Assembly: GCF_020745735.1 (NCBI RefSeq)
Contig: NW_026869311.1
Location: 62,001-126,000, forward strand
DNA length: 64,000 bases
Reading direction: 5' to 3'
DNA from: Hemiscyllium ocellatum
Lineage: Eukaryota
Shown: piece after piece, positions 1,705-61,508 of the stretch
Position numbering within the stretch: the first letter of the stretch is position 1
Layout of the letters: every line of letters starts with the position of its first letter
Translations under genes and position numbers: made by a program
The notes under the pieces: model-generated
Seen by the model: the letters and a program-made list of their open reading frames with translations, nothing else
The model's database searches: none
Told to the model about the DNA's origin: nothing

Positions 1705-3442
1705 TCAGTCACTCTCCCCCAGGGTGAGCCTGTCAAACAGGTATTCTCCCAGGCCATTCTCAGGGGCTCCCAGTCTCTTCAGGTTGGTGATGTGATCTCC
1801 CAGCTTCTTGATCATCTTCACTTGCTCATCCAAGTAGTGCCTCTCCAGGAAGTCACACAGCTGGAAGGGAAAGAGAAAATCTGATTATGTCAAGATCAAC
1901 TTGACTTTTCTCTAAGCCTGGTATTCCCCTCAGTATGGAGAGTGGACAGTTAAGTGATGTGACAGATTGCTGAAGAGCCTTTAGAAAGTGCTCAGATCTG
2001 GGCTACACCAGAAGCGTGGCCCACTCCCATACTGCACTCCCCACCATTTACATAGAAATCAGAGGCTAAAGGACCAAGTGTCTTATCCATTTAAGACAGA
2101 GCCCAGACATAAACACATCAGGAACTCACATGAGGGTCAGTGTGGTCAGAGGAGAGTTTGTGTAGATCTAGCAGACTCTGGTTCACATCCTTCTCCATCT
2201 GCAGAGCTCTCTGCATTGCCTCCAGACCATTGCCCCACTCATCCTGCTCTGGCTTCTGGAAGGCAGGAAAGGCAAAGTGGTCACTTTCTTACAGGTCAAG
2301 TTCATTTTTAGTGAATGAAGCAATATGGCTTTTCGCATGATCAATTGGAATTGAATTGCTTCAAATCCACATTAGCACAATTACTGTAAATCTGACCAGA
2401 TAAACTTTAAATCAAGTTGCTTTAAATAATATGAAGTACAATTGTTTAATCTAGGAGAGATTAGTCAAACCCAACCTTGATATCCTGCAGGATGACTCTG
2501 CCTCCACGTTTATTCTGGAATTCCATCAGTTTCTCAGCATGTTCCCGTTCCTCATGGGACTGCTCCTTGAAGAACTCAGCAAAGTGACGCAGGGCAACAT
2601 CATCCCGGTCAAAGTAAGAGGACTGGAGGGGGAAGGAGTAAAACAAGCCATCTCACATTTAAAAATCTAAGCAATTCTGTTTCAGAAGTTAAAAAGCCAA
2701 GTTTAAGAATGTTGTTATTTTACATTTGTTGAGCAGGTAGCTCTTAGACAAGCAAAATGTTTAAGAATTAATTTTAAAACTGAAATTGTTGGAATATACC
2801 ACCCCTTGCCCTCAGGAAGTGGGAGAGGGTGGAATTTCTTGCCACTCCACTTCTGCAGACAGTGGAACTGACTCCAAGAGAACAGGTATCAAGGAGACAG
2901 TTTACTGTCAAAAACCAACCAAATGTTCCTTTCTGTTGTGGAAATTGTTCCTGACTACACATTCTAGTACCCAAGAAAAGTTACATTAGACCCACATTGC
3001 TATCTTCAGCTCAAGACAACAAACATTAGTGAGGACACATACACCATTGCACCAGCTATGGTCACCTAATAATAACCACTGCTTCAAGTTACAGGCCAGT
3101 TAACCTGATTGTGTTGTTGGTTAGTTACATAGGAAGTAGCTGAGCTAGTCCAGCATTAAACCCCCACAGAAGACAGCTACTACAAGGAGCAGGCATTGCT
3201 CAAATGTTAACTTCAACAAGAAATCTTTCACCACTCAAAATGGTTTCCCTCCCAGGAATAGAGTATGGCATAAAGCAATTTCATTAAACTGGAGAAACTC
3301 CAACTTCTTCAAACACAGAGACCAGGAGAACCAGCCTCACCATGGAGAGGTAAACATAGGAGGAATAGAGCTCCAGGTTGATCTGCTTGTTAACAGCATC
3401 CTCACAGTCCTTGTGGTAGTTCTGACACACTTGGGAGGCCAT
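1705..3442 (-). CDS. Ferritin heavy/middle-type subunit, array copy 1 (intact, 176 aa)
   Basis: Exons 3442-3341, 2622-2476, 2255-2130, 1860-1705 (102/147/126/156 nt), all GT-AG, phase 0. Spliced: [176 protein letters not shown]. Ferroxidase residues E24,Y31,E58,E59,H62,E104,Q138 present. AATAAA at 1590-1585. Confidence 0.97.
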
Positions 3443-3670
3443 CTTCCCTATTCCCACACTCTATCACCTAGACAACCGCAGAACTAAGCCTCTCAGCCAC
3501 AAGCTCTTCTATTTATCCTCCTAGGACATCCTGCACCCAACAGGGAGTGGCAGCACCAATGATGATTGATGATCCCCAATAGCCTATCAGGAATCACCAG
3601 GCATATAAGTATCAATGAACAAAGGAGGAGGGGTTTGGCAAGGAGCCATAACCTAGAGCCAATCAGAGAT
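3443..3670 (-). promoter_or_regulatory. Ferritin core promoter and short 5' UTR, copy 1 (GGATAAATA TATA-like box, Inr-like TTAGTTC, CCAAT boxes)
   Basis: GGATAAATA at 3518-3510, ~30 nt upstream of Inr-like TTAGTTC (~3485). CCAAT at 3556 and AGCCAATCAGAG at ~3657. The same architecture precedes all eight intact 5' ends. Confidence 0.7.
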
Positions 3671-59531: not shown

Positions 59532-61508
59532 TCAGTCACTCTCCCCCAGGGTGAGCCTGTCAAACAGGTACTCTCCCAGGCCATTCTCAGGGGCTCCCAG
59601 TCTCTTCAGGTTGGTGATGTGATCTCCCAGCTTCTTGATCATCTTCACTTGCTCATCCAAGTAGTGCCTCTCCAGGAAGTCACACAGCTGGGGGAAAAAA
59701 AAAGCAAAGAAGTTTCCTTAACAGTAAGAATCCCATTCTTTGGTACATAATCAAGTGATGCCACAGAACTAAGAGGTCAGTGCCCTAACATAACCCTGAA
59801 ATATCAGTTAGCAGTAGGGTTCAAGAATTACATGACTTATTCACAGTATCCAAAGACAGCATTTATATTCAATGCCACTACTGGGGGTGGGGGTGGGGTC
59901 TTGCAATTTGCCCAGTGACACAGCAAGTCACTGCTAAGCAATGGAATAGCACCTGCCCAAAAAGTGTTCAATTGAACAAGGTCAGGAAGTTTAGAATAAT
60001 TTAAGTGAGTTGAAATTAGAAATCTTGCAATTTGATTGGACTGCACATGCAACTTCCAACTGTTTTTGAAAAGGGGTCTGAAAGACCAATTCTGAAGGTT
60101 TTGCTTTAGTTTTGAATGGCTAGTTAACATTAGAAAAGGCACCAGCATGACCTGTAAGGAACAAATGCTCTTTTGTCAATGCTTCAGAGCATGACAAAAA
60201 ACACCACATTTGTCCACATTGGTCATAGGCCAATGCAACAGATTCTGACAGAGCCAACCATATCAGGAGTTAGGGAGGGGATCTATGCAGACTCTACCAG
60301 AGATCTTTTACAACTGCAAAGAAACAAAAAACACAAGTCAACAATCATAGCAGAAGGAACTCACATGAGGGTCCGTGTGATCAGAGGAGAGTTTGTGCAG
60401 ATCCAGCAGACTCTGGTTCACATCCTTCTCCATCTGCAGAGCTCTCTGCATTGCCTCCAGACCATTGCCCCACTCATCCTGCTCTGGCTTCTGAAGGGGG
60501 GGAAAAACAGATGCTTCAATGAATTAGCATGTCATAATAGTTACAACATAGTTACAATCATTTGTTTCAAACATTTAGTGCCACAAGTCTAATTGATGCT
60601 AGTTAGAAGTAAAATTAAATCCAACCTTGACATCCTGCAGGAGGACTCTACCTCCACGTTTATTCTGGAATTCCATCAGTTTCTCAGCATGTTCCCGTTC
60701 CTCATGGGACTGCTCCTTGAAGAACTCAGCAAAGTGACGCAGGGCAACATCATCCCGGTCAAAGTAAGAGGACTGCAAGTCAGAGAATAGACAAGGAGAG
60801 AGTCAGAATAGACAAATTTCCATGATCCATTCTTTTCCCAAGCCTGCGCAAAATGCTGATCCATTGAAAGCACAAGGAGAAAAAAAGCCACAACATTTGA
60901 AAACAAAAATCAGGATTATTGGTAGAACTTCAGGGTAACAATTATGTTTAAAGATTAAGACAGTGAAAGGTTTTCCACTAGCTGCTAGAGTTTAACAAGT
61001 CACCCAGTTAAATTAAGAACTAGGGATACTAGAAACCAATATTAAAAATTAGTATGTCTAGCAGCATGTCATATAAGTTATATTCAATTGAAAGATATTT
61101 GATTTTCCAATCCAAAGGATTTGATTGGATAGAGCTAAGTATTAACAATACTCATGACTATTTACAACATCACATTTGCCTTAATTAGAAAGCTCCATAA
61201 GAGGAGTATTATTTTTAGATTTGAACTGGTCAGGAAAGGGGGCAGCTATTTTCAAGTAACAATAAACTTATTTTTAAAATATTCACCATACCACATTTAG
61301 GGAAAGCTATTGAAATGCATTTAATGAGCCGACTCATATTGAGAGGTGTTCTAACTACTCAATTGAATTTAAGGCTGACTTTATTCTATCAGTAGCCAAG
61401 CCTCACCATGGAGAGGTAAACATAGGAGGAATAGAGCTCCAGGTTGATCTGCTTGTTAACAGCAGCCTCACAGTCCTTGTGGTAGTTCTGACACACTTGG
61501 GAGGCCAT
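59532..61508 (-). CDS. Ferritin heavy/middle-type subunit, array copy 9 (intact, 176 aa)
   Basis: Exons 61508-61407, 60772-60626, 60490-60365, 59687-59532. GT-AG, no stops. AATAAA near 59448. Confidence 0.96.

Follow-up and report, generated by a model that had tools for sequence, protein, structure and literature searches.

A stretch of 64,000 nt from the epaulette shark, Hemiscyllium ocellatum (GCA_020745735.1), called the window below, carries a tandem array of ferritin genes. It lies on an unplaced scaffold of 155,646 bp and contains no assembly gaps. We searched it by tblastn with the product of the first copy and by blastn with the exons, and it turned out to hold exactly nine ferritin units (c1 to c9), all on the minus strand and arranged head to tail at a spacing of 6-8.5 kb (Table 1). 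After each unit was spliced in silico, seven of the nine proved to be intact (c1, c3, c4, c5, c7, c8 and c9), with four exons of 102, 147, 126 and 156 nt (the last exon is 153 nt in c7 and c8), introns all bounded by GT-AG, and a reading frame that stays open over 175-176 aa. All nine copies have an AATAAA signal about 110-125 nt 3' of the stop codon, and all seven intact ones keep a TATA box and CCAAT/ATTGG boxes upstream. A preliminary description of this DNA had proposed nine tandem four-exon genes at these coordinates, seven of them with intact frames and promoters, which is borne out by the searches and the splicing of each unit.

Table 1. Ferritin copies (given from ATG to stop), one promoter and one retrotransposon in the window
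Feature	Position	Strand	Description
c1	1705..3442	-	intact, 176 aa; exons 3442-3341, 2622-2476, 2255-2130, 1860-1705; GT-AG introns, open frame
c1 promoter and predicted ~45-nt 5' untranslated region	3443..3700	-	TATA 3518-3510, ATTGG (CCAAT) boxes; same block 5' of c3-c9
LINE retrotransposon, c1-c2 spacer	4878..9030	+	endonuclease-like and reverse-transcriptase open reading frames; Pfam RVT_1 E 2e-36, Exo_endo_phos weak
c2	10962..11792	-	pseudogene; no exon 1, 3' 83 nt of exon 2, exon 3 intact, 2-nt indel (frameshift) in exon 4
c3	16899..19581	-	intact, 176 aa; chimeric unit
c4	23665..25737	-	intact frame, 176 aa; variant Y31F and M34V
c5	29791..32667	-	intact, 176 aa; R46H, R60Q, E174A
c6	36539..38290	-	pseudogene; TGT to TGA at codon 127
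c7	44237..46242	-	intact, 175 aa; C-terminus changed (GEE), R46C, E68A, K143E
c8	52007..54188	-	intact, 175 aa; intron 2 long, 761 nt
c9	59532..61508	-	intact, 176 aa

The array runs on past both ends of the window. Positions 1-1704 share 76-95% identity with the spacers downstream of c4, c5 and c6, and the gene calls on the source scaffold place another 176-aa ferritin about 3.6 kb to the left of the window, which confirms the leftward continuation suspected earlier; a further ferritin begins about 66 nt past the right end. The scaffold thus holds at least 11 ferritin units. In the window and among its scaffold neighbours there are ferritin copies and long interspersed nuclear elements (LINEs) only, and no single-copy FTH1-type locus beside INCENP. 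The introns of most copies cannot be aligned with one another, which excludes that one copy is an assembly duplicate of another. It could still be that the 155.6-kb scaffold is an uncollapsed second haplotype of part of the cluster on the 50-Mb chromosome scaffold, in which case the array would be real and the genome-wide copy number over-counted; it may also be a paralogous segment. The c1 protein is called on the 50-Mb scaffold too (identical, with similar gene length and spacing), and several RefSeq proteins are common to both records. But the c9 protein is found on the small scaffold only, the spacing of neighbouring genes differs between the records (7,073 vs 7,403 nt), and the copies within the window are too different for duplicates, so that we consider over-counting of this kind somewhat unlikely.

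The product of c1 matches the Pfam family Ferritin (PF00210) over residues 15-154 with an E-value of 8.9e-42. Its closest solved structures are bullfrog H ferritin (1BG7) and M ferritin (1MFR and variants), matched over the full length (2e-86) in the same 176-residue frame. In the alignments all ferroxidase ligands are present (E24, Y31, E58, E59, H62, E104 and Q138, against E27, Y34, E61, E62, H65, E107 and Q141 in the human H reference). Three of the four L-type nucleation glutamates are also there (E54, E58 and E61; the human L reference residues are E53, E56, E57 and E60), lying in a 12-residue motif; at the fourth position stands His57, a residue shared with frog H and M. The array product is, by these residues, a catalytic H/M-type ferritin subunit, and the reading of an H-type ferroxidase set plus E54/E58/E61 made in advance of the alignments stands. 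Bullfrog M and H ferritins share the 176-aa frame, the ferroxidase centre and the 12-residue motif with it; however, bullfrog M has Asp at position 141 where the array product has Met, and the array type stands apart from the tetrapod frog-type sequences in the tree. Frog ferritin mRNAs carry iron-responsive elements (IREs), and frog ferritin genes are not known to form large arrays.

Over all copy pairs, the ratio of nonsynonymous to synonymous divergence (dN/dS) averages 0.18, and the copies are therefore under purifying selection. The preliminary description had conjectured that a few variant subunits could tune mixed cages. The sole clear variant among the window copies is c4, in whose exon 1 (25636-25737) a TAC to TTC change replaces the ferroxidase tyrosine (human H Tyr34), the second substitution affecting the last codon of the exon; its product may be a subunit with altered catalysis. 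At residue 19, which corresponds to Arg23 of human FTH1, every window copy has Lys except c8, which has Arg. If Arg23 is needed for NCOA4 binding, as we assume, ferritinophagy targeting of the array product might also be different.

The copies have a common promoter. The 260 nt 5' of the ATG can be aligned across the eight copies that have an exon 1 and also with copies of the same type in the whale shark. A TATA box lies about 75 nt 5' of the ATG in eight of these eight copies, and the motif census counted 2-5 CCAAT/ATTGG boxes per copy, compared with 0.53 expected in shuffled sequence. The whale shark copies show the same TATA/CCAAT promoter and the same predicted short leader. A metal-response motif scan gave upstream matches which are too degenerate for interpretation.

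To place the array in its family, we note that the database search returned hundreds of near-identical shark ferritins, with single 90% clusters of 54-180 members from the genera Chiloscyllium, Stegostoma, Rhincodon, Heptranchias, Pristiophorus, Carcharodon, Scyliorhinus, Mustelus, Heterodontus and Cetorhinus. Clusters of 69-180 proteins each draw on many shark species. Proteins of H. ocellatum fall in the same 90% clusters, RefSeq annotates such genes in many sharks including this one, and tandem copies are also found in the whale shark and the zebra shark. Elasmobranch ferritins form three groups in the tree, namely the array type, a “middle subunit-like” type, and canonical FTH1, which groups with the H chains of chimaera, teleost and salamander. 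The array genes resemble canonical FTH1 in having four exons with identical phases, 73-76% protein identity and all ferroxidase ligands, whereas canonical FTH1 has a 5' IRE and is a single gene (beside INCENP in the skate), and the array genes are IRE-less, tandem, placed in a separate clade and higher in codon bias and in GC content at third codon positions (GC3). The middle-like type is itself tandem, with a period of about 8.5 kb in the zebra shark (L005:10001-15181 and L006:10001-15162), and lies on one chromosome with the H-like arrays in Chiloscyllium and Stegostoma. Its proteins (P0117, P0072, P0090 and P0112) have Lys at the bridging ferroxidase glutamate (human H E62), which we take to be the substitution of mammalian L chains.

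Giant ferritin clusters of sharks have already been reported in a 2024 preprint (bioRxiv 10.1101/2024.09.09.611499). According to this preprint, the Greenland shark has 155 “FTL” and 179 “FTH1” copies, about 80% of which lie in three clusters that are syntenic with the great white shark; the duplications date back 250 million years or more, over 85% of copies are full length, and the largest cluster shows ovary-specific expression. In common with the present array are tandem full-length ferritins kept across sharks and two subunit types on one chromosome, and an ovary or oocyte role is plausible. As far as its accessible text goes, the preprint covers Greenland and great white sharks but not the epaulette shark, and contains a single ferritin passage, which does not deal with IREs, promoter architecture or an exon/intron contrast. 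The window array is a member of this already reported kind of cluster, and with the RefSeq annotation and the preprint the earlier suggestion of an undescribed system has to be dropped. Our literature searches dealt with the expansion of ferritin in sharks, with ferritins that have no IRE, and with ferritin in the ovary of sharks or in named shark genera, and gave only this preprint and a paper on snailfish (PMC10746142, see below). In these searches, no statement on IREs in these shark genes was found.

For transcription, four RNA runs were mapped to c9 and 2.5 kb upstream of it, two of them from one sample of H. ocellatum and one each from two other species. RNA contigs join exons 4-3, 3-2 and 2-1 exactly at the predicted sites (59687/60365, 60490/60626 and 60772/61407 in c9 coordinates), and at the level of the family the array genes are transcribed and spliced as predicted. 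The spliced contigs deviate from c9 at a few positions, and the 3' untranslated region of c9 itself is not covered by any of them, which means that they derive from close paralogues of c9. The depth of array-type contigs is 12-18 in H. ocellatum and 330-560 in the other two species. An exact-protein look-up with the closest Chiloscyllium protein gave genome records only.

One may ask on this basis whether most copies are silent or decaying and few are used, the array being mainly a by-product of unequal crossing-over and not a dosage device. This would agree with the two pseudogenes among nine copies, with the depth of merely 12-18 and the uncovered end of c9, and with exact-protein look-ups for c1 and c9, which returned genome records only and no transcript contigs. 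It is nevertheless unlikely, given the dN/dS of 0.18 over all pairs, the fact that none of the seven intact copies has lost its promoter, splice sites or poly(A) signal, and a promoter that can still be aligned with the whale shark copies; the Greenland shark clusters, for which the preprint reports mostly full-length copies and expression of the largest cluster, also speak against it (bioRxiv 10.1101/2024.09.09.611499).

The array genes have no recognisable IRE. Control of ferritin translation by the IRE and the iron regulatory proteins (IRPs) is the textbook case of post-transcriptional iron sensing in animals. We searched the whole window against Rfam at the gathering score and obtained no match, the IRE models RF00037 and RF02253 included. 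At Rfam E<=10 the IRE models had no match either in the full 64 kb on both strands or in the region upstream of c1, and a direct motif search of the window for the C-bulge/CAGWGN hairpin (C-N5-CAGWGN-N5) gave none with a complete upper stem. As a positive control, the skate FTH1 gene (the INCENP neighbour) and its transcript contig were run through the same search and returned IRE_I at 46.7 bits. With this working control, the IRE-less locus put forward in the preliminary description holds for both the model searches and the hairpin search. The same search likewise found no IRE in the whale shark array copies and in the zebra shark middle-like arrays. That the two amplified types of subunit share a promoter and leader lacking an IRE appears to be unpublished. 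From the position of the TATA box, we infer that transcription begins about 45 nt upstream of the ATG, which would make the array mRNAs IRE-less, and probably independent of IRPs in vivo.

Iron control could be retained through a non-canonical or distant element, either a divergent hairpin to which the Rfam models are blind or an IRE carried by an upstream exon that lacks annotation. The transcription start is placed by the TATA box only, and the RNA contigs extend just 8-12 nt upstream of the ATG. However, the sequence just upstream of the ATG is purine-rich and shows no acceptor-like tract (alignments A1 and A2), which speaks against a hidden upstream exon, no splice joint occurs upstream of exon 1, and in two species the TATA and CCAAT boxes keep a constant spacing to the ATG. 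Together with the empty model search at E<=10 on both strands of the 64 kb and the lack of a CAGWGN hairpin with C bulge, by a procedure that picked up the skate IRE, this makes retained iron control very improbable.

The exons of the array have changed in a different way from the DNA around them. Among the window copies, synonymous divergence (dS) is 0.04-0.11 with a mean of 0.073-0.074, whereas introns 2 and 3 differ by p 0.45-0.55 in most copy pairs, the level of unrelated sequences, and the spacers of most pairs have diverged beyond alignment. The locus had been called homogenised, which is right for the exons and wrong for introns and spacers. Between the epaulette and the whale shark, dS is about 0.10 and close to the within-window mean, and the exons change 3.5-4 times slower than the flanking DNA. 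The c6 block is collinear with the whale shark copy at L004:4527-7371 with divergence K of 0.35 in non-coding DNA and 0.055 in exons, and the c1 block is collinear with a whale shark copy with K of 0.42 and 0.059 respectively. Recent homogenisation within the species was considered as the sole cause and rejected, as the between-species dS of about 0.10 is near the within-window value of 0.074. A generally low dS of ferritins was also rejected: in skate FTH1, dS (0.028) equals the intron divergence (0.019-0.026), while the synonymous sites of the array change far slower than its introns, and the exon/intron contrast is therefore specific to the array family. Such strong exon-only conservation appears to be unpublished, and the array is a clean example from nature of how, in a multigene family of great age, sequence conservation can be confined to exons.

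Several observations bear on how the exons are kept alike. With its upstream spacer (36594-43412), c6 is collinear with whale shark L004:2315-7371 over about 5 kb at about 72% identity, and the c6 copy lineage is, judged by these flanks, older than the split of epaulette and whale shark. Exon 4 is disrupted in the whale shark counterpart too, where two exon-4 matches that overlap are separated by about 400 nt. In its exons, c6 shows 4-13 differences in 375 positions when compared with the other window copies and 20 in 375 when compared with this flank-defined counterpart, which suggests that copies of one genome have to some extent been copied onto each other; no such excess of within-genome exon similarity is seen for c1. 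The GC3 of 0.66-0.68, compared with an intron GC of 0.37-0.43, and the moderate codon bias (effective number of codons 43) fit GC-biased conversion and selection on synonymous sites alike.

Besides copying, the units have exchanged parts. The units of c4 and c5 are 87% identical over 6.2 kb, and the 3' halves of c2 and c3 are 89% identical. From its 3' flank to exon 3, c3 resembles c2, and from exon 3 to the promoter it resembles c5, with the switch inside exon 3 (17325-17501). Similarly, the 3' flank and exon 4 of c1 are like those of c6 and c4 up to a switch in exon 4 (1686-1872), and its 5' half has no match among the window copies. These changes of partner within exons suggest unequal exchange in the conserved exons, as would be expected if exons were the only homology left for it.

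Taken together, we favour the reading, with a probability of about 60%, that the 64 kb of the window are part of a far more extensive tandem cluster, specific to elasmobranchs, of IRE-less H/M-type ferritin genes whose likeliest role is bulk supply of the oocyte. Each unit has its own TATA and multi-CCAAT promoter, four exons and a poly(A) signal, and its predicted leader of about 45 nt is IRE-less. We propose that, as the leader has no IRE, IRP1 and IRP2 would be unable to gate translation, and ferritin output would be set by transcription and gene number. The most probable use would be bulk ferritin for large yolky oocytes, by analogy with the largest Greenland shark cluster, reported in the preprint to be ovary-specific, and an ovarian or oocyte function in the epaulette shark is what we infer from this analogy. 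The second amplified and IRE-less ferritin, of the L-like middle subunit-like type, would possibly be the partner of the array type. The array itself would turn over in three ways: by unequal crossing-over with breakpoints inside exons, giving chimeric units; by loss of copies, as in the two pseudogenes of nine; and by sequence copying between copies within exons, on top of an unusually slow change of exons.

Some facts weigh against this reading. Ovary specificity is reported for the Greenland shark only, and in a preprint. The RNA runs carry coded names without tissue, array-type contigs of H. ocellatum stay at a depth of 12-18 while other ferritin contigs reach thousands, and c9 has no contig on its 3' untranslated region. 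Moreover, two of nine copies are dead and one has a ferroxidase-site change, and a non-coding exon further upstream would be compatible with a transcription start predicted from the TATA position.

Instead of supplying the oocyte, the array could serve somatic cells, whether by protecting them when oxygen returns, against oxidative damage or against excess or lack of iron, or by withholding iron in immunity. An erythroid use, besides the immune one, had been conjectured in the preliminary description. The epaulette shark is known for its hypoxia tolerance, and array-type transcripts occur in RNA runs without tissue labels. The model for such a role is fthl27 of the hadal snailfish, a 14-copy tandem expansion which lowers reactive oxygen species (ROS) in cell assays (PMC10746142). 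It is like the shark array in being a lineage-specific tandem amplification of an H-like ferritin that is read as a dosage device, but its 14 copies are recent, species-specific, broadly expressed, ROS-linked and of independent teleost origin (PMC10746142). The shark expansion, in contrast, is common to many shark orders and not particular to the epaulette shark, and according to the preprint it goes back 250 million years or more, with an ovary-specific largest cluster (bioRxiv 10.1101/2024.09.09.611499). In addition, a motif scan of the 400 nt upstream found no antioxidant-response element. We therefore regard the somatic role as quite unlikely, and the oocyte supply remains the preferred role.

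In a wider form of the oocyte reading, elasmobranchs may run a second complete IRP-free ferritin system, in which a catalytic H-like family (that of the window) and a ferroxidase-deficient L-like family (E-to-K at the bridging glutamate), both IRE-less and multiplied into tens or hundreds of tandem copies on the same chromosome, would make maternal “yolk” ferritin for large eggs, and whose exons would have been held near-frozen, synonymous sites included, by exon-limited and possibly GC-biased copying for more than 100 million years. This we put forward tentatively, with the odds slightly against it. IRE-less ferritins outside IRP control are also known in mammals as mitochondrial ferritin (FTMT) and FTHL17, which have tissue-restricted expression. 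They are intronless, retrogene-like single genes, whereas the shark genes keep three introns and stand in arrays. With one IRE-bearing ferritin kept and most gene copies placed in IRE-less arrays, bulk iron storage would be detachable from the iron status of the cell, and egg provisioning is the most likely setting for it. The arrays as such are already public, and what is added here is that the genes lack an IRE, that they have a promoter in common and that their exons and introns contrast so strongly.

Apart from ferritin, the LINE in Table 1 fills much of the c1-c2 spacer. Its reverse-transcriptase open reading frame has 759 aa, and a weak GDSL-esterase-like match is also found in it. Inverted, diverged fragments of this element are present in other spacers and within the first intron of both c3 and c5. 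Sub-threshold Rfam matches in the window are chance matches or repeats, one of which is a mir-750-like match in intron 1 of c7 (45771-45865, minus strand). It coincides with a near-perfect hairpin with a stem of 41 bp (-72.6 kcal/mol, z -14). A microRNA gene was rejected for this hairpin since the window contains the sequence of its arm 13 times, and it is a palindromic interspersed repeat, like a miniature inverted-repeat transposable element.

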